Shown piece by piece: positions 29,803-43,094 of a stretch of DNA of 56,397 nt (the first letter of the stretch is position 1; the number at the start of each line of letters is the position of its first letter). Source of the DNA: Salpingoeca rosetta (lineage: Eukaryota > Protista > Choanoflagellata); assembly GCA_033442325.1 (NCBI GenBank), contig JAWQFM010000001.1, forward strand, positions 2,258,044-2,314,440. Reading direction: 5' to 3'. The position numbers and the translations under genes were made by a program. The notes beneath the pieces are model-generated. The model saw only the letters and a list, made by a program, of their open reading frames with translations. It did not search any database and was not told where the DNA came from.

Positions 29803-30607
29803 TGGCGACGTGGGTTCTGCTTGTCTCTTGCGTCTCTTCCTCCCCTCCCTTGTACCGGTTCCCTCTCCCTTGTCTCTTCTGTTGTCCCCTGATTCGCTTC
29901 CTTGTTGCTCCCGCCGTGTTGGTGTTATTCTTGATTAGCATGACGTGTCAACTTGCGTCTGTGTGCTGACGGTGTGCGCGACGAGTGCCATCTTCAGGAA
30001 TATGGATGAAGCCCTTACTCGTCCCTTGTTCCTGCATGCCATGCTGTTGCCTTCACCCAATACCCCCTTTGTTACACTCCCCACGTGCCATGCCCGCTGT
30101 GCGTTGCCACCACCAACACGCTGTTTGCCCGTTGCGGTCTTGCTGTTGTCCAGTGTTGCTTGCTCTCGCCTTTTGGCTAGCGTTTGCTGCCTTGGCTTGT
30201 GGTTCCTGAACAATGCATCCCTTGTAACCGCAGTGCCAATGTGCGGCTCGTCACGTGTGTGCGCGTGTGTAGAGTTTTCATTGGTCAGCGAAAAGAGGCT
30301 GACATAATGCGAGAGAGTATGTGTGTGTGTCTGTGTGTCTGTGTGTCTGTGTGTGTGGAGGGGGGACAGAGAGAGAGAGAGACAAAGAAAAACAAGGGCG
30401 TAATGACAATCGAAAGCAAAAGCAAAAGCAAAAACAAAGAAGCAAGCAATGAAAGGTAGAACACGTGTGGAATGCGAGAACAGCAACATCAGCTCATGTG
30501 TGAAACAACACACGACACGAGTGCCATGTCAACAACAAAAACAACAGCAGCACACACGCTATCGAGGAATCAATTACATATGGGGGCGACGCGTCGTGCC
30601 CTGCTGC

Positions 30608-30942
30608 TCACGCAACAGACTCGTAAGGGTCCGACGTCTCAATCGTGGTTGGCAGGTCCGCACTCAGCTGCGTCACAATCTGCCCGCCACCGAGTTCAAC
30701 ATCATCGCCGCCACGTGCGCCCTTGCCTCTGCCTTTGCCACCGCCATTGTCCGCGGGGGAGTGTCCGGACCCTGCAACGCCGCTGTACATGTTTGCGGAG
30801 CGGGCAAGCGGGTTGATGGTGATGCCCGCAGCAGCAGAGGCTGACGTGTGGATGTCTGCAGCGGCAACGCGCCGGTTATATGCCCCTTGCCCTGATGTGG
30901 TGGTGGTGGTGGTGGTGGTGGTGGTGGTGGTGGTGGTGGTGG

Positions 30943-30985
<43 letters not shown>

Positions 30986-32027
30986 GGTGAGGTTGTTGCT
31001 GTTGCGTTATGTATCGCAGGTGAAGATGATCAGATAGGAGAACGTACTGTTCTTGGCTTTGACGCTGACGAAGATGACGACTGCGATCAAGATAATCCCT
31101 GCAGCCACGCCGACGGCCGCGCCCGTCTCGCTACACACAGACGCAGATACACACACACACAGACACGTGTTCACACACATGCAAAACAAGAGGAGGAGGA
31201 GGAGGAGGAGGTGGTGGTGGTGGTGGTGGTGGTGGTGAGCGGAATAGTTTTGTTTTTGTTTTTTTTTGGGGGGGGGGGAGGGGGAGGGGGGGGGGCACTT
31301 GCTGCGTGTGTGAGGTGAGTACAGCACATGTGATGAGGATGGTGACGACACAACAGTTTCGCACTTACGTCATGCCCCACTTGAAACCCGCGGATCGACC
31401 TACACATCCAGCAACAACACCAGAAAGGGGTGAGTTGGTCAACGGGCTGTGTGTCTCTGTGCCTGTGTATGTCTGTGTGTCTGTGCATGTCTGTGCATGT
31501 CTGTGTTTATGTGTCTGTGCCTGTGTCTGTGTCTGTGTCTGTGTCTGTGTATGCGTATGTCTGTGTGTGTGTGCCTGTATGTGTATATGTGTGTATCAGA
31601 TCGCCAAACGCAACTCAGGACCACATTCGCAACCCATTTGTGATTCACATAGACACACACAGCACAACACCTGCTTCTGGCGTGGTTGCTGCTGGGTCGG
31701 CGGTGGTGGTCGACCCTCCGCTCGGGCCCGTGCCAGGCTGTGCACCGGTACCGCCTGTCACTGTCGTTGTCGTCGTCGTTGTTGTTGTTGTGGTGGTGGT
31801 GAACACGTCCTGTGCAATGGGGACGGGGGCGCCATCAATGTTGATGGATGCGGCGGCGAACAGGCGGCTTGACAGCACCGCCAGCGGTACATTCTCGTCC
31901 GGAACAGCGATCGTCACCCGCACACTCAGCGCATTCACCGCGCTCACCTGTGTGTGTGTGTGTGTGTGCGTGTGTGTGTTGGGGGAGGGGGTTGGGGAGG
32001 GGGTTCGTCGTGGTTCGTGTGAGTGAA

Positions 32028-32107
<80 letters not shown>

Positions 32108-33192
32108 TGTGTGGAATGGAAGTCAGTGTGCAAGTCAGTGTGCAAGTCAGTGTGCGAGAGAGTGGAAGTGAGTCAGTGTGGGGTTGGCGTGCAAGGGGTG
32201 ACGTGCTGTGTGCATGAGGGACGGGCACATGTGCGCAATGCATGTGTCACGCACGTCTGTGATGTCGATATCAGCAGTCGTTTGGAGAGCAGTCTTCAGC
32301 GCAGCAATGACGGCTGCAAGCATATCACCCAGCGACACAAGGGGCACAAGTGAGTGCATGACAACAGGCCCCACCGTACGCGTGCACATGCATGCGAAGC
32401 CTGCACCCAGAGCGAGGAACCAACAGAGGGAACAACACATGCGCACAGTGTGTACGTGTGTGTGTGTGCGTGCGTGCGTGTGTGATTGTTTGTTTACCTG
32501 CGCGCCCGTCTGTGGTGAAATCGCCTGCAGACATCTGCACAAGTACACGGGAGCAAAGCAGTGGCCGACGAATATGGTGGTGAGGACGGCACAACAGCAT
32601 CAGGGACACAAACACGCACGGAAACAGATCCCAAATGTCCACACATCCACTTACACATCCACCTGCACATCCACCTGCACGTTCACATGTATACACGGGG
32701 CACACGTGCAGCGGCACTTACATGAGGCGCCAGCATGCTCTTCAGAAAGTAGCTGTGCAACACACCTGTTGTTGTCAGAACAAACAACCACACACACACA
32801 CACACACATACACGCACATACAAACACACACACACGCACACGTGAGCAGGTATTAAGATGTGAACGAACAAAGAGCTGCAAAGCGTGACACACGGGGAGG
32901 CGAAGAAGGCAACATGCGCATGCGCATACAGCGCGTGCAATGTGACAGTGTATGCGCGTGTGCATGTTGTGCGTATTGTGTGTATTTGCACGTGTGTGAG
33001 AGCATGAACCCACGTTGGCCAAGGCAGACGCCCCGATCTGTGCATGTGTCTCCCTCGGTTTCTGGATTGCCGTCATCACACATGTTGCCACCACCCTGTG
33101 TGAACGAAACAAAGCATAGACAAAGGCGATGTTATGTGTCGTTCAACGGTTCACACGTGCGCATGTGCATGTGCGCATGTGCGCATGTGCGC

Positions 33193-33231
<39 letters not shown>

Positions 33232-34331
33232 GCACATACACACAAGCAAATACACACACAGACGCACGCACGCACACGCCATCAGTGCTTACCGGGTACT
33301 CGTCGCGCACTAGCTCACAGTTGAGCTCGCCTTCATGGTTGAAGCGAAAGAAGCAGTGCTCGCCGGTGTTTGCACAGCACGTGGCAAAGCACGCCGGGTC
33401 CTGGCGCACGTGGACAAGAAACTTGCGGCCACTGTTGCATTCGCTCTTCTTGTCGGAGATGAAGTAGATGGTGTCATTCACGGAAAAGCCCTGGCACCAC
33501 AAACCAAATCATACAGACAAGGAGGGGGGGGTTCAGGAATAAGCACGGGTTGGTTGAGCTCAACCACGCATCGAGGCCGCCCACGCCAAGCAACGCAGTC
33601 ACGCAACATTGTCCTCACGTACCGTCAATGCAATGTCTTTCCAAGGGTGCCGGTCCGGCGCCTGTGCTTGTGGAACTGGGATGTAGAGCTTCTCTGTTCC
33701 GCAGTACTTGGCTTCGCCGGCGTTTGGATCCAGGGAGGCGTCGCACTCATCGTACGCAGCCTTGTTGACGATTTGAAACGCAATGAGACCGCCAGTGCAG
33801 GACTGTGCGTACACAAACCCATTGGCGTACATCTGGTAGCGAAGAAAGGTGTCGGGAACATGAATGTCATGAGCACAAGGTCACACAACATGCGGCTCCA
33901 CTAAGCAGACGAACGTTGTGTGTGTATGTGTGTATGTGTGTGTGTGCGCGCGCATGTGTGCGCATGTGTGTTTTTGTGTGTTTCTGTGTGTGTATGTGTG
34001 TATCTGTGTGGTTTTGTGTGTGCATGTGTCTGTGTGTCTGTGTGTGTCTGTCTGTCTGTCTGTCTATCTCTGCGCATGTGTGTTGCAAGACAAGTGCCAT
34101 CATGGCATGACTGGAGAGAGTCTCTTGCCTCCTCATCCTCGAGCAACCCGACACCACCCAACACCCCAACACCACCCAACGCACCTCGTAGCCACCAGGA
34201 GGCATGGTGTCCAGATGTGGGTCGATAACGTCAATCTCAAAGGCAGGCTCAGCGCGTGTGGTCGCAGGCAGCAGCACGGCCACCGCTGCCGCCGCCGCTG
34301 CCACGGCCACTAGCAATCTCAACAACATCAT
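30608..34331 (-). CDS. Type I membrane protein: signal peptide, ephrin/cupredoxin-like domain, Cys-rich repeat, SEA-like region, Thr-rich stalk, TM helix, Tyr-containing tail
   Basis: About 11 exons joined in consistent phase. Signal peptide [27 protein letters not shown]; [47 protein letters not shown]; [19 protein letters not shown]; poly-T; [26 protein letters not shown]; tail ending DPYESVA*. Confidence 0.8.
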
Positions 34332-34400
34332 TCACGTCCTTCTGGCTTGCGCTTGTTTGCGCTTGCTTGCTTGCTTGCTTCTTGCTTGCTTGCTTGCTTT

Positions 34401-34436
<36 letters not shown>

Positions 34437-34705
34437 GTTGGTTGCTTGGATCCTGGGCTCAGCACCGTCCACCACACCACACCCTTCTTTTCTCTTTGCT
34501 GCTGCGCCAAATCCAGCTCAGGCGACGCGGAAATGTGGCCATATCTTCACGCATTCGTCCACAACCACCACTGCGAAGCAGATAAGGCAACAAGAAAGCA
34601 AAGCTGCTGAGCCTTTCGCGCGCACAGCACACACACTTGCTGAGAAACACACGTAGCACACGAAGGAACACAAAAGGGCACTGTGGTTGTTGGCGTCGTT
34701 GAAGC

Positions 34706-36152
34706 ATGGCGGCGTATTACCTGACGTATGCCGTCAAGCCCACGGCTGTGACAGAGGCGCTCACCGTCAACCTGTTTGAGGCAGACTCGCCATGCTTGGT
34801 GTTGGCCAAGTCAACCCATCTGCAAGTGTTCAAGGTGAGGTGGCTCAGCGAACCATGATGTGCATGAATGATCAAGGAGCGACAAGTGCTGGATGGTGGC
34901 AGTGACGATTGCCCTGAATGCTTGGACCCTGGTACATCCTCGGCTCCCCTTTTTGCTTTGCTCCTTCCCACAATATCTGTGTGGCTCTCACACGTTGGGG
35001 TGGGGGGGGGGTTGTTTTTTTTTTTCTGTTGTTGTTGTTGTTGTTGTTGACCTTGCGCTGGAGCACAGATGGGTGAGCAAGGGCTGGAACCTATTCACGA
35101 CTACCCCGTGTACGGCAAAGTGGCATGCATTCGCAAGATGACATTCCCTCAGGTTTGTCTTGAGCCGAGTGTGTGTGTGTGTGTGTGTGTGTGTGCCTGT
35201 GTGTGTGTGTCTGTCTGTGTGTCTGTGTGTCTGTGTGTGTGTCTGTCCGTCTGTCTGTCTGTCTGTGTGTCTGTCTGTCTGTGTGTTTGTGCTGTGCCTG
35301 TCGATTGTATGTGTCACCGAGCTCTTGCCTGCGCGCACACGAGATAAATAGCTCACGACCATGTCCATCCTCCACTCCCGCTGCTGATGCTGTGACAGAT
35401 GAAAGGCCTTGACTCGCTCTTGGTCATGACAGATGACATGCGATTTTTTGTGCTCACCTTCAACGAGCACACAAAGAAACTAGAAACACACACCAACGGC
35501 AACCTCCTTGTACGCCCATGCTACATGCCATTTGATTTTGGGTTTGCGTCATTGTTGCACACGTGCGTCGGACGTGTGTGACATGTGCGTGTGTGTTCTT
35601 GTTCGTACGCGCACGCGCGGTCGCACTTCTGTTGCCGACATGTCCACATGGGGTGTGCTCATCAACAACCGCTCCATAACGACGATGTATTGGGCTGCAG
35701 AACCCAAGCTCGTTTCCCATGGAGACCGGCCCGCTCGTTGCTGTCGACCCAGACTGCCGCGTCATTGTCATGGCAATGTACCCTGGCCTCGTCAAGGTGT
35801 GCGCACATGCATGTGTGCATATGTTTGTCCGTGTGTGCGCGAGCGTGTGTATGTGTAGCTACTCCTGTTCTCGAAGTCCCCGCCCTACTCGTGCCTCCCC
35901 CTTGCTTAATCGCCCGCGCGGTGCCCGTCCTTACTTTGCCCCACACACCCTGCCAGATTCTGCGCATCCACGGGTGCAAGTTTGAGGAGGAGGCGAGCGA
36001 GGCGCGGCTGGATGCAGACCAGGTGCTGTCCATGGCCATGCTGCACGGCTGCGCAGAGCCAACACTCGCCGTCCTCTGCCAGCGCGCTGACCAGCGCTTC
36101 GTCAAGCTCATGCGCGTCACCGTACGTGCCCGCAGAATTGCGCGTGCTTGTT

Positions 36153-36218
<66 letters not shown>

Positions 36219-39200
36219 TGTGTGTTCGTGTGTTTGTGTTTGTGTGTGGGTGTGTGACATGCATGGCTGCATGCATGCTCTATGTGAGCCTTTTAAGTGC
36301 AGTGTCTTCGCCTCTCTGGCTGTGACAACGCCTCACGTTGCCACGGTTGTACGCACATGTGCATGTGTGCGCTCATGTGCTCATGTGTGTGTGCATGCGT
36401 GTGCAGTCCCGCAATGAGCTGGTGGAGGTGTCATCTGTGTGGAAGACGCGACTCGAAGGCGCCGTGCCAGATTCGGCCCACTTTCTTCACCCAGGTACAC
36501 GCATGAGATCACATTTTCACACGGTCTTGGTTCCACGCGCTGATGCTTGCAATGCCCTGCAACATTCTGCGCTCACACGCACACACACACACTCTCTCTC
36601 TCTCACTTGCATGCACACACACTCACACATGCACACACACACATACGTGCACACTCACACATGCACACACACACATACGTGCACACACATACACAATGCA
36701 CGCCTTCGCCACTTGCCGTGCCTGCTGCCGCCGCCGCAGTGCCCAACACGAGCGAGGGGTGCCTGGTGTTTGGGGCGGACGCGGTTGTGTATGCGGATGC
36801 AAACGGATACAAGGCGGCGAGCATCCCCGAGATGATGGTGCAGGCCGTGGCCGACGTCGACGACTCGGGCGCACGCTTTCTCATTGGTGAGGGGCTGGGA
36901 TCGGCTTTTCGGCATTGGCTGGCAGGGGAATTGTTGCCGACGCATGCAAAGTGCACACACACATACTCACAATTGATCAAATTCAACCATCATCCGACAC
37001 ACTTCACAATGCAAATACACACGCGCATCGCACACACACTCACACACGCCCTTGCACATGGTTACCCTCACAAACCCCCTACCCCGCTTGGCACGTGGCA
37101 ATGCGGTGTCTGCCGGCGGTGCAGGCGACAGTCTCCGGGGCGGACTCGCGCTGCTGGTGCTGGAGCGGGAGGAGGACCAGGTGCAGCAGATTGTGTACGA
37201 GCCGTTTGGCGAAACAGTTGCGCCGTCCACGCTCGCGTACCTCGACAACAGCGTCGTCTTTGTCGGCAGCGTTGTCGGCGACAGCCAGGTGATTGCCAAA
37301 TGGGCTTGCTTGCTTGCTTGCTTGGTCGACTCTTTTGTTGTCCGGCTGGCTGGCTGAGGGTGAGAAAGAGGGGGGAGGGAGGGCTCCATGAGGAGGGTGG
37401 TCTGCAGTGTTGGATTTGTCTGCAGGCTATGCTGTTACACCGCTGATGCTCCCCGTGCATGTGCTGTTTCACTTTAGGTGGTCAAGCTGGAGACCGACGA
37501 CGACAACCAGAACAAAATCATCGTCCTTGATGTGCGTATGCTTGCCTGTGCTGCCCTGTACTCTCTTCCATTCTCCCCGTCCTCCACCCGTTGACATCTG
37601 CCCACCTGCCCACTTGGCTCACATGTGTGCAGTCCCAATTCACGTGCTGACCAATGTCCTGCGGCTGTCTATATCGTGTGTCTGCGTACGTCTGTGTGTA
37701 TGTATGCATGCCTGCACATATTGCACATATGTGCGTCTACCTGTGCGCTGGCGTGGCTGCAGACACACGAGAACATTGGGAGCGTGCTTGACATGTGCTC
37801 GCTGCCGCAAGCGTCGTTTGGCGAGACGCGGCTTGTAACGGCATCTGGGGCGGGCAAGGACGGCTCCCTGCGTGTGATCCAGCGCGGTGTCAACATCACG
37901 AGCTCGGCAACCGTGCAGCTCGACGACCTGCAGGTAAACCCCCTTCCTCCTCCCTCACCTTCATGCCCCATCTAGGACGGCTGTACACAACACACATGCT
38001 TACACGTGTACATGCACACGCACACGCGTACACGTGCATGCACATGGAATCACATGTATGAGTGTGTGTGTGACGCCGCCTCCTCCCGTCCACTGCCGCT
38101 TGTGTGGTGTGTCACGTTTCTTTGGTTTGTCTACGACTCGTTGTCTGTGTGTGTGTGTGTGTTGTTGGCCCTGTTGCCTGACATGTGTATGTGCGTGTGA
38201 CTGTTGTGATTGCAGCGTGTGTGGGTGCTCACCAAACCCAGCGGAGAAGCAGAAGCAGCAACAGAAGAGAGTTTTCTTGCCCTCTCCTTTGCCGGCGGCC
38301 TCGCTTTTCTCCAATTCGAGGGCGAAGAGGTGCGCACAACTGCGCATGTGTGTGTGTGTGTGTGCGTGTGTGCTTGCTTATCTGTCTGTTTGCCTGTTTG
38401 TCTGTTTGTCTGTGTTGCCCGTTGTCGGCATGTAAGCCGGTTGTTGCTGGTGCAGTGTGCGCATGGATGATGTAAGTTGGTGACACCTCGTTGCAGTCAC
38501 GCATGTTTACGTTGTGTTGCCCTCCTTTTGCTTGAACTCACATACGCACACGCTCGCACACACACGCACATGCACGCACACGAACATGCGACAGCTGTGT
38601 GGGTTTGAGGTTCCGTCGGCACCGTCCGACCCTGCACTACTCTGCTCCAACGTTGCAGAGAATCAGGTCCGCACCCAGCAGCTAACCGTTTCCGCGACGT
38701 CCTTGTTTTGCAAGTCACTGCACGTTACTGCCACGAATTACCCCATTTTGGACACCCATACATGCACCCAACACACTCACATCATCACCATCCGCATCAT
38801 CATCATCATCATCTTCGCCATCACTACGACCCCTACACGTGCGTGTATACGATAACGGTACCGATCAGTGGCTGTTTGTGACGGAGGATGAGGTCGTGCT
38901 GGTGTGCGCCGAAACACTCGCTCGCGTTGCGGAATGGAAAGCAGCAGAGGGACAGGTGCGTGCATGGTGAACGCAACACACAGCAGCGAGGAGGGAGGGA
39001 GCGGGATGATGGTGGTGAAGAGGTGCTTTGTTATTCATGTTGCCGTACTCATTTGAGTTGATTGAACACGGCGCACTTGTTGAGTGCCTACACCCTGTCA
39101 CATCTGCCCTCGTTAACCCCTGAAGGCCACTCTAACAACGTTCCTGTAACCACGTGCCCCATGCACCGCCCGCGATGTCACCACTGTCCACAACAGGCCA

Positions 39201-41664
39201 TCGGTGCATGCGCGTGCAGTGAGAAGCAGCTTGTGGTGTCGAGTGGACGACAGCTGCTCATCTTTGAGATTGCAAAGGGAAAACTCACGCAAACAAAGGA
39301 CACAACGCTGGAGCACGAGCTCTCGTGTCTTGGTCAGCCATGCGGTGTTGTTGTGGGCCGTGTGTTCCACGCGTCTGTGTGTGTGTGCGTGTCTGTATGT
39401 GTGTGTGTGCGTGTGTGTGTCTGTGTGTGTCTGTGTGTGTGTGTGCTGGTCATGAAAGCGTGCCTCAACGCTAGCAGCTCACATGCACCCTGTGCCTGTT
39501 TGCACATGCCTGCCTGCATGCGTCTAGACATTCTTCCCGTGAACGATGACGGCACGAGTGTGATGGTTGCGGGCACGTGGAACGTTGAAGCGAAGGTGTA
39601 CCACCTTCCCTCGATGCGCGTTGCCTCCTCAGCACCGTTCAAAGCCGGTGTTATTGCAACGTCGTGCGCAATCACGCGGCTTGGCGATCAGAACGTCGCG
39701 TTCTTCGGGATGGGAGACGGATCCGTGGTCCGCTACATCTTTGCCGAAGGCAGTTGTAAGTTGGCCGCTAGCATTGCTTTGGGTTTTGCATGTGCAAGAA
39801 GGGAACAGATACGCACACACATACACACACATGCGCATTCTCTTTCTCTGTGCACCCGTGCGTGCACTTGGGTGAACGAGAATGCTTGCTGCACCATGCC
39901 CTACCTGCTGCCATTGCGACTGCTTGCCGACTTGACATGATGTGCCGGTGTGTTTCCATCCAAACAGGGCATATGACCAACCAGCGACACGTGCATGCAG
40001 GCAAGCAGCCCGTGTCGCTTGTCTCGTGCAAGTTTGCCTCTGGCCCTGCCGTCGTCGCCCTCTCAAACACGTCCCTCCTCTTCTACGCGGACTCAGGCGT
40101 AAGTGTGTGTCTGTGTGTCTGTGTGTCTGTGTGTGTCCGTGTGTCCGTGTGTATGTGTCTGTGTGTGTGTCTGTGTGTGTCTGTGTGTATGTGTGTGCGT
40201 AGACAAATGCGCACATAGGCACATATACAACATACACACATGCATACAAGCAACATACACACGCAAGTTGCATACTTGTGTCTGTGCACTTGAAACACGT
40301 GCTACAGCTAGTGCCCCTCACCTGATGCTGTGCATTACCGTGTCCTGTGCAGCGAGTGACGTTTTCCACCTTGAACGAGGCGAACTTGACGTGCGTTGCG
40401 CCCCTGAGCACGCCCGCCTACCCTGACAGCCTCGTCTTCTCCACCCCAGCCAGCCTCGGCATTGGCCAGATTGGGCGCATGAACAACCTCCACATCAACA
40501 AGGTACCGTTCGCCTCGGCTGGCCACCCCAGACACACCCTCCACACACGTGTGCGTGCACAAGCAAAAGCATACACACACACATACCTGCATAAACCGAC
40601 ACGTTCGCGCGTTTGCACGTATGTACAAGATACACACAGCACGTGCGTTGACCACACAACTGCTGGTTCCACTGGCCCTTCGCCTCGCAGGTTGCGCTTG
40701 GCTTCTCGCCCGTGTCCCTGACGACCATCTCGGCCAACCCCTCGTATGTCGTGGTGGTAGGCCACGTCGATCAAGGTGCGTCGCTTTAAACGCGCTTCTC
40801 GGTCGTCCTGTCATGCTGCTGACAGCGTTGATTTGTTGTTGCTGTCGCCTAAATTGCTCGATTGCTGACCTTGCCTTGCGTGCTGGCCCTGTATGTTGTT
40901 CGCATGTGTATGTGTGTGTGTGTGTGTTTTGAAGAGGATGGAGGGATTGCGAGTGCCATCCGCGTGTTTGACGGGACGACGCTGGAGATGGTTGCATCGC
41001 ACGAGCTGCCGGCTCCGGAGGCCGTCAACTGCGTCATCCAGCACAAATTCAAGGACGACAACACAGAATACTTCATCATCGGTGTGTGTGTGTGTGTGCG
41101 TGTTTCTGATTGTCCTCTGTGCATGTCTTCACATCACTGCCACACCACTCATCACCGCAACGGCGTTACTGTTGTCGTCGTGTCCAGGAACGGCGTTTGT
41201 GGACCCGACGGAAACACAGCCGTCACGCGGCCGGATCCTCATCTCCAAACTCGAAAACAAGAAGGAAATCGCAATCGTCCACGAATGCGAAGCAGCGGTG
41301 TGTGTCTGTGTCTGTGTCTGTGTCTGTATGTCTGTCTGTCTGTCGGTGTGCGGCTTTGCTCGTGCTTGCCGCCTCCAGCTCACGTTGTCGTGCGTATGTG
41401 TGTGTGTGTGTGTGCGTGCGTGCATTTGCAGGGGAGCGTGTACTGCTTGACAAAGATGTGTGGGAAGGACACAGATGATCTGGTTGCGGGGATCAACAAC
41501 CAGGTTGTTCACTTCAAATACGATGCGACTGGACAGGACGCTGCCAAGAAGCTCCGAGCAGGTGACGACGACATGAGCCTCGATTGCCGTGTGCTTGTTT
41601 GCAGCCGCGCGTGCGTGTTGCATGTGCTGGTGTGGCATGCCACATGCTTAGTGCATTCATTTGG

Positions 41665-41696
<32 letters not shown>

Positions 41697-43094
41697 ACTC
41701 GCGCGCACATACACTTGCACACACACTTGCGCACATGCTCACACGTGTATTTGTATTGTTGGGTTGCGTGTGCATCATATCTGCTGCGTCGCTGCTGTTT
41801 CGTCCAAGCAGTGAGTGGCAACCAGAACTTTGGCGCCGTCGTCTCCCTCGACAGCTGGTGACTTGCAATTCCTGTTGACCACCAGTGCACCGTCGTCATT
41901 GGGACCTCTTGCCCTTGCATGACAACCCATGCCTCACACGTGCACATGTTTGTGTGTGTGTGTGTGTGTGTGTGTGCGGTGGATGCAGCGACGACATTGT
42001 GCTTGTTGGCGATATGCTCAACGCCGTCTTTGTCATGCAGAAGGCGCAGGACAAACTGCAACTCGTACGCTTCAAGCTTGTGTGTGTGTGTGTGTATGTG
42101 TGCGTGTGTGTGTGTGCGTGTGTGTGTGTGCGTGTGTGTGTGTGCCTGCCTGTGCGTGTCTGCGTAAATGTGGGTGCATGTCTGTGGGTGTCTGCGTAAA
42201 TGTGTATGAGTGTGCGTGTGTGTGCGTATGTTGTTGGGTGAGCTGATACCTGTTGGTGCAACGTGTTGCGCACTGCTGCGTACAGGTGGCTGGAAGTCAA
42301 ACAGCCAATTGGGTGTCGTCGTGCGCGCTTGTCAACGAAACAGTCTTCCTTGTCGCGTCGCATGCCCACTCCCTCTCCGTGTGCCAGGTAGGCGGTGCTT
42401 TGTCACCCAGTGTCCCCCTTGCCACGAGCCTCTTTACAGAGGGGAGAGTGTGTGAATATGTGTGTCTGTGTGAACATGTGCCTGTCTGTCCGTGTGTGTG
42501 TGCACCTTTACGTGCCTTTATCGCAGCTCATTGCAACTTCTCATTGTTGCTCTCTGTGTATGTGTGTCTGTGTCTGTGTGTGTGTGTGGCTGTGTGTATG
42601 TGTATCTGTGTGTATGTGTGTGTGTGTGTGTGTTCTGCACCCCCCCCCCCCCCAGCGCGAGTTTGAGCCCGGCTCGACCATGCAGACGCTCAACGCCAAG
42701 TTTGAGATCTACCTTGGGGAGACGGTGACCTCGTTCGTGCGTGCGGCGCTGGGCTCTGCGGCTGCCGTCGACAGTAGCATGCCGCTACGCAACACCTTCT
42801 TTGTTGTACGTTCGCCTCATAGTCATGGATTGCACACGTATACAGATTGAAAAGGCACACACGCACATGCACGCATGGTTACCGTCTGGATGCACGCATG
42901 GTGTCTGCATATGTGCATTCGCATATGTGTGTGTGTGAGAGAGTGTGTGTTGCCGGCCACGATTGTCTAATTTTGGTCTTACATGCCTGGTTTCATTCAG
43001 TTTGGCACAATGGGTGGTGGCTTGGCGTGCTTGCTGCCGCTCACACCGCCACAGACGGAACTCCTGACAGCGGTACGCTTGTTTGTCTTGGCAT

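Follow-up and report, generated by a model that had tools for sequence, protein, structure and literature searches.

Introduction

The Eph/ephrin system is a major means by which animal cells are sorted into tissues through contact with one another, and whether it originated before animals is hence a real question. A locus in the choanoflagellate Salpingoeca rosetta gives that question a concrete form: does this organism encode an ephrin-type ligand, and would such a protein have a receptor with which to signal? Among genetically tractable choanoflagellates, only one Eph/ephrin pair of pre-animal age has been proposed, and the gene concerned supplies the ligand of that proposed pair. This gene lies on contig C1 of the S. 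rosetta assembly, within a stretch of 56,397 nucleotides that was analysed as a whole and is hereafter called the window, and for which a first-pass annotation had proposed an ephrin-B-like or proto-ephrin ligand predating animals.

The proposal of an Eph/ephrin pair has been in print since 2019-2020, and the idea of a proto-ephrin older than animals is not new, having appeared already in papers of 2019, 2020 and 2022. The protein, its family and the S. rosetta gene were likewise published in those years, and what we describe is a rediscovery. The new elements are small additions with no new biology: an 11-exon model in genome coordinates, a link from accession to locus, a marine homologue with conserved introns, and a C-terminal ESVA that is shared with S. 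infusionum. Our analyses indicate that the gene is probably PTSG_11572, a member of a small choanoflagellate family of type I proteins carrying at its N-terminus a copper-free, ephrin-type variant of the cupredoxin domain. A splicing artefact is unlikely as an explanation of the gene, and it is likewise unlikely that the product is a redox copper protein.

Results

An 11-exon gene on the minus strand

Splice-site and phase logic resolves a gene of 11 exons on the minus strand of the window (34331-30608, equivalent to C1:2,288,651-2,292,374), which is the candidate for PTSG_11572. Each of the ten introns is bounded by GT-AG, with consistent phases and with lengths of 132-352 nt, and the joined frame of 1452 nt has a single, terminal stop and specifies a product of 483 aa. 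The features of the model, in window positions, are these:

34185..34331, minus strand: exon 1, with the ATG, the signal peptide and the first strand region of the ephrin-like domain, ending MPPGGYE
34331-34251, minus strand: signal peptide, aa 1-27, within exon 1
33623..33832, minus strand: exon 2, core of the ephrin-like domain (aa 50-119), with C61, C79, C93 and the motif NKAAYDEC
33293..33490, minus strand: exon 3, last strands of the domain and first five Cys of an 8-Cys module, starting GFSVND
33490-33398, minus strand: domain part of exon 3, aa 120-150, GF...YFIS...C137...KFLVHV
33014..33095, minus strand: exon 4, remainder of the 8-Cys module (CDDG...C...GVC), with GT-AG borders and a consistent frame
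32722..32765, minus strand: predicted exon 5, start of the stalk domain, with donor CAT/GTAAGT
32498..32534, minus strand: predicted exon 6, stalk domain, with AG/GTAAAC borders and consistent phase
32255..32313, minus strand: predicted exon 7, stalk domain, with AG/GTGCGT borders and consistent phase
31671..31947, minus strand: exon 8, end of the stalk domain, Thr run and Gly/Pro/Thr-rich linker, an open frame with AG/GT borders
31369..31399, minus strand: predicted exon 9, juxtamembrane, 31 nt, TAG/GTAAGT, its phase linking exon 8 to exon 10
31048..31130, minus strand: exon 10, transmembrane (TM) helix at aa ~364-386 and the basic stop-transfer residues KAKN
30608..30891, minus strand: exon 11, cytoplasmic tail with Y394, Y425 and Y479 and the C-terminus PYESVA, an open frame ending in TGA

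Exon 1 has an in-frame TGA just 5' of its ATG, encodes a hydrophobic N-terminus and ends at the donor GTGCGT. Exon 2, which starts MYANG and ends IALT, is in phase 0 between AG/GT borders; phase 0 and GT-AG borders are common to exons 1-3. The frame and phase given for exon 5 are the sole combination by which exon 4 can be joined to exon 6 with no intervening stop. Every peptide quoted in the first-pass annotation was found on the minus strand, in exons 1 (ending GGYE), 2 and 3, and the interval that it gave, 33405-34250, takes in what follows the signal peptide in exon 1, the whole of exon 2 and that portion of exon 3 which belongs to the domain. The 11-exon model also contains the stalk, TM helix and tail with three Tyr and a PYESVA end that it placed after the domain. 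The 8-Cys module, the stalk as a domain of ~90 aa and the exon count itself go beyond that earlier description.

Read from its N-terminus, the 483-aa protein comprises the signal peptide, a four-Cys domain of ~125 aa, the 8-Cys module, the stalk, the Thr run, the TM helix and the tail. The Cys of the ephrin-like domain are C61, C79, C93 and C137, and the domain contains one N-glycosylation sequon. The 8-Cys module (aa 151-212) leads into the stalk domain, which is devoid of Cys and precedes the Thr run and the Gly/Pro/Thr linker. There is a single TM helix, for which the Kyte-Doolittle 19-residue mean peaks at 2.9 at aa 361-371, followed by the basic stop-transfer residues and a cytoplasmic tail of 97 aa (aa 387-483). 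This arrangement supports the reading of the product as a type I membrane protein of the unicellular holozoan S. rosetta; the membrane anchorage that is expected of ephrins, whether by GPI or by TM helix, is present here as a TM helix.

Across window positions 30500-34400, RNA-seq-like runs account for 0.34-0.35 of sampled words, where the share of coding sequence is 0.37, and the transcriptome-derived orthologues of other choanoflagellates are unbroken across the positions of junctions 1-4. Genome sequence searches with exons 2, 3, 8 and 11 found no paralogue within S. rosetta.

CA/TG, CAGA or similar microsatellites occur in almost every intron of the gene (window 30915-34100). Intron 10 contains a (CAT)n(CAC)n run (~30915-30985), the open frames of which read poly-His, poly-Ile or poly-Thr and which is noncoding in our model. 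A neighbouring gene on the plus strand (34706-41875) is arranged head to head with the ephrin-like gene and starts 375 bp from its ATG; its first exon resembles proteins of the DDB1/CPSF160/SF3B3 family and a downstream ORF has a weak match to the CPSF_A region (E 4e-4). The upstream region shared by the two genes (~34340-34440) holds a GCTT/GCAA-type microsatellite. Elsewhere in the window, a 525-aa open frame on the plus strand (632-2206) has a match (E 3e-17) to PF02517, the family of Rce1-like CAAX prenyl endopeptidases.

Probable identity with PTSG_11572

PTSG_11572 (F2TW21) is the S. rosetta "ephrin-like" protein of Arcas, Wilkinson and Nieto (2020; PMC6993872), who reported a distant similarity to the Eph-binding domain at an HHpred probability of only 81.6%, a single TM helix, Cys suited to cross-sheet disulfides as in ephrins, and no copper site in an IonCom prediction. 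We located this accession by interpolation between two anchors on C1, namely CBP (F2TVQ2; PMC4770211), placed at C1:2,785,273 by the sole HAT_KAT11 match, and IQGAP (F2TWA6; PMC4265756), placed at C1:1,945,693 by the RasGAP_C match on C1. The order of accessions was obtained by reading their last three characters as base 36/36/10 digits, which gives 11422 for CBP, 11541 for F2TW21 and 11626 for IQGAP. UniProt accessions on C1 run opposite to the coordinate, one accession step being 4.1 kb, and linear interpolation between CBP and IQGAP puts F2TW21 at ~2,295,500, which is within ~5 kb, or about one gene, of the ephrin-like gene.

From the interpolated position, the lack of a paralogue in the genome and the matching published description, we infer that the ephrin-like gene is PTSG_11572 (F2TW21), on the assumption that accessions were issued in genome order. 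Compared by position and published description, the two agree in organism, contig and described features. The supplements of Fairclough 2013 hold no entry for PTSG_11572 and hence no value for its expression in colonies as against single cells.

A marine homologue with the same exon borders

When the whole library was searched by HMMER with exon 2, one true relative was returned, P0001, which is carried on three short ocean-metagenome contigs (L003, L004 and L005), two of which are labelled Tara Oceans. Two HMMER matches of exon 2 to repeat proteins were put down to chance. On Tara contig L003 (1-975) there is a homologue of exons 1-3 in which the introns fall at the same residues, that is, after GGYE, before GF and after YP. 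Identity to S. rosetta is 35% for exon 2 and 52% for exon 3, and the introns do not align; with exon borders shared and introns not aligning, chance does not account for the exon match. The four Cys are all conserved, the MP.GGYE motif is kept in exon 1, and this homologue too is without His or Met between the YF and final-strand segments. L003 comes from an uncultured marine organism, probably a craspedid choanoflagellate and a fairly near relative of S. rosetta. Like the microsatellite-bearing introns of S. rosetta, intron 2 of the Tara homologue (L003:499-697) is TG-rich. Scans of JGI metagenomes detected no homologue, the only matches being chance ones of 13 residues in soil contigs.

Relationship to published choanoflagellate ephrins

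Krishnan, Degnan and Degnan (2019) described transcriptome-derived, ephrin-like sequences from four choanoflagellates (PMC6485061): S. infusionum m.130281, S. urceolata m.134676, Stephanoeca m.338217 and Acanthoeca m.393972. According to that study, the sequences can be aligned with the ephrins of animals, and a search of PDB by HHpred recovers ephrins for them "with high probability"; each of the four has a TM helix, and the group belongs to an ephrin clade that is apart from monodomain cupredoxins and from apicomplexan SRS proteins (PMC6485061). The S. rosetta member is absent from the supplement of that study, as judged by a text search with test peptides; Arcas et al. list one.

Compared by eye, and at low identity, all four have their whole architecture in common with the S. 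rosetta protein and are collinear with it over the full length. They share the signal peptide, the stalk domain, a Ser/Thr-rich linker, the TM helix and a Tyr-bearing tail, together with the motifs MPPxGY, Y(D/E)xCD and GF...YY/YF and a Cys module containing CC and CDDG; the four Cys of the ephrin-like domain are visible in these orthologues as well. For S. infusionum and S. rosetta the corresponding segments, again by eye, are MPPEGY/MPPGGY, GYDSCD/AYDECD and GGICLQGAKF/ECNSGRKF, and the S. infusionum block GFEIGKQYYLAS, followed by GGIC, has a matching block of 12 residues in S. rosetta. In both species D-P-x-C...CC...C is followed by CDDG...C...G.C.G, the stalk, the linker, the TM helix and the tail; the CDDG...C...G.C.G motif of exon 4 occurs not only in S. 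infusionum but also in S. urceolata and Stephanoeca. The loops of the S. rosetta protein are shorter than those of the published four, the segment from YFIS to C137, for example, being much shorter. On such alignments the putative orthology of the S. rosetta protein to the published choanoflagellate ephrins is supported.

At the C-terminus, S. infusionum m.130281 ends in DESVA and the S. rosetta protein in YESVA, and thus the last four residues, ESVA, are identical (30608-30625 in the window). The C-termini of S. urceolata and Stephanoeca differ from ESVA. Conservation of this end between two species suggests that it may be a C-terminal docking motif.

Profile and structure searches

The coding sequence of the domain is distributed over exons 1-3, which, taken singly, gave no Pfam match to Ephrin or Cu_bind_like at E<=10, only noise. 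When all six frames of the genome were searched with PF00812, PF02298 and PF01404, no match was obtained, and control genomes were equally blank, so that this result does not demonstrate absence. Neither an ephrin nor a cupredoxin was recovered from PDB by sequence searches with exon 2, exon 3 or the first 33 aa of exon 3, nor by searches with two-sequence profiles of exons 2 and 3; the sequence and profile searches with these two exons produced one lectin match, attributable to chance. Feature searches of the Atlas with exons 2 and 3 returned nothing usable, and a protein-database homologue search with the frame holding exon 8 was blank, its length window lying out of reach of a 483-aa protein.

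The candidate receptor

PTSG_06770 was identified as an Eph-family tyrosine kinase by Fairclough et al. (2013). A 51-aa peptide of this protein, taken from the supplement of Krishnan et al., maps to C18:320601-320741 on the minus strand, inside supercont1.17:315855-321267, its published location, which marks the genome as that of S. rosetta ATCC 50818; assembly contig C18 carries the coordinates of Ensembl supercont1.17, the contig numbers being shifted by one. A single exon (C18:319353-320828, minus strand) encodes the ligand-binding-like domain, a short Cys region, a Thr-rich stalk, the TM helix and the juxtamembrane region. In comparison with animal Ephs the ectodomain is much reduced in length, and it lacks FN3 repeats. 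AlphaFold2 run without an alignment gave it a pLDDT of 35, and a protein-database homologue search with the ectodomain was blank. For the S. rosetta Eph ectodomain, a 2022 review presents a ColabFold model that comprises an Eph ligand-binding domain and a Sushi domain and was overlaid on human EphB6. In the survey of Krishnan et al., ligand-like and receptor-like genes were found together in one choanoflagellate only, and the receptor in that species is without a kinase (PMC6485061).

Discussion

The nature of the domain

Residues 61, 79, 93 and 137 form the ephrin-like pattern of four Cys that the first-pass annotation had recognized, and copper ligands are indeed absent, as it had stated, from the YFIS loop: no His or Met occurs between the YFIS and KFLVHV strands, and Ser replaces Cys at the ligand position of phytocyanins. 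The predicted disulfides, C61-C93 and C79-C137, are read from the order of these residues. C2-C4 is the counterpart of the one disulfide that phytocyanins possess; C1-C3 is, to our knowledge, specific to ephrins and absent from phytocyanins. Both Cys of this ephrin-type pair (C61 and C93) are present in S. rosetta and in the Tara homologue. ColabFold models of choanoflagellate ephrins have the features expected of the family, according to the 2022 review. The ephrin reading is thus partly supported, by the arrangement of the Cys, the lack of copper ligands, the putative orthology and the published HHpred and ColabFold results, and the domain is likely to be a true ephrin-type homologue with a putative cupredoxin fold.

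The alternative that survives best is a lineage-specific, copper-free surface glycoprotein of cupredoxin or phytocyanin type, with no functional link to Eph, whose likeness to ephrins would come from descent from monodomain cupredoxins and whose target could be the matrix, prey, bacteria or a partner in mating. Such a protein would fit the outcome of the Pfam, six-frame genome and PDB searches, none of which returned an ephrin match, and it would fit an 8-Cys module and a stalk domain that animal ephrins lack. The blocks ...V....Y..C and YF(I)x...C..G.K.x.V, moreover, are also typical of phytocyanins. It is less easily reconciled with the ephrin-like pair C61 and C93, with the published HHpred results and phylogeny that place the orthologues among ephrins, and with the existence in S. 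rosetta of an Eph-class kinase having a predicted Eph ligand-binding domain; on the genomic side, the co-occurrence of ligand and receptor in one choanoflagellate only of the survey by Krishnan et al., with a kinase-less receptor, speaks in its favour. We regard this alternative as unlikely, if well short of negligible.

Very improbable is the view that unrelated open frames have been joined, that there is no single gene and that the domain is an artefact. Exons 5, 6, 7 and 9 are short and were placed by splice-site and phase logic only, which is where doubt about a single gene arises; against this stand GT-AG borders at 10/10 introns, with consistent phases and no stop, and a Tara contig, L003, on which exons 1-3 and their borders are conserved and introns are not. 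Transcriptome-derived orthologues span junctions 1, 2, 3 and 4 continuously, and the RNA-like share of 0.35 of words against a coding share of 0.37 also argues for one gene.

A membrane-anchored, redox-active blue-copper (type 1) cupredoxin is the least probable reading of all and scarcely tenable, given that a general cupredoxin-like sequence pattern and the existence of a true Cu_bind_like protein elsewhere in S. rosetta (F2URU3; PMC6993872) are set against a segment from YFIS to KFLVHV with neither His nor Met and with Ser at the ligand-Cys position, a lone Cys in that segment which aligns with an ephrin disulfide Cys, a Tara homologue equally without His or Met there, and a negative IonCom result for F2TW21.

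A possible role at the cell surface

The domain is held off the membrane by the Cys module, the folded stalk and the mucin-like Thr run. If it is an ephrin-type homologue, as we prefer, it would be presented to the outside of the cell by a glycosylated stalk, and there it may serve as a contact ligand or an adhesion module. It would then bind a partner on another cell or surface, for which PTSG_06770 is the one named candidate, and the tail may recruit PDZ or SH2-type proteins. A role as cell-contact ligand would be in keeping with this arrangement. That the domain is the ligand of PTSG_06770 in particular is rather doubtful. It is more doubtful still that S. rosetta has a working contact system of Eph/ephrin type, predating animals, in which the ectodomain binds PTSG_06770 on a neighbour and the tail, through its Tyr and ESVA, signals back.

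Comparison with phytocyanins and ephrins

Phytocyanins (PF02298) resemble the S. rosetta protein in domain size and in possessing an ...V....Y..C block and a YF.x...C..G.K...V block. Their copper ligands, Cys, His and Met/Gln, correspond by eye to Ser, Glu and Arg in S. rosetta. The S. rosetta protein is anchored by a TM helix, whereas many phytocyanins use GPI, and unlike phytocyanins it has a second Cys pair, of ephrin type.

Among ephrins, the first-pass annotation had singled out the B class. As an interpretation of the locus it holds for the type I protein, the four-Cys pattern and the missing copper set, but not for a specific relationship to ephrin-B: the tail has in common with that class only Tyr and an S-x-hydrophobic end, lacks the YYKV end, and contains no sequence block common to the tails of EFNB1-3. 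The 8-Cys module and the folded stalk have no counterpart in animal ephrins, the region equivalent to the G-H loop has a sequence unlike theirs, and there are fewer residues in the C-D region.

The resemblance to ephrins lies in the domain itself. The four Cys occur in the same order in EFNA1 and S. rosetta (by eye), at spacings, S. rosetta against EFNA1, of 18 and 29 for C1-C2, 14 and 12 for C2-C3, and 44 and 48 for C3-C4. By eye, the human ephrin block ILYLVEHEEYQLC (EFNA1/EFNB2) lines up with a block of 13 residues in S. rosetta, in the form ...V....Y..C, and YYYIS...C.RLKVTV of human ephrin aligns with IYFIS...C..GRKFLVHV. With animal ephrins (PF00812) at large, the S. rosetta protein shares the lack of copper ligands, a membrane anchor and four Cys.
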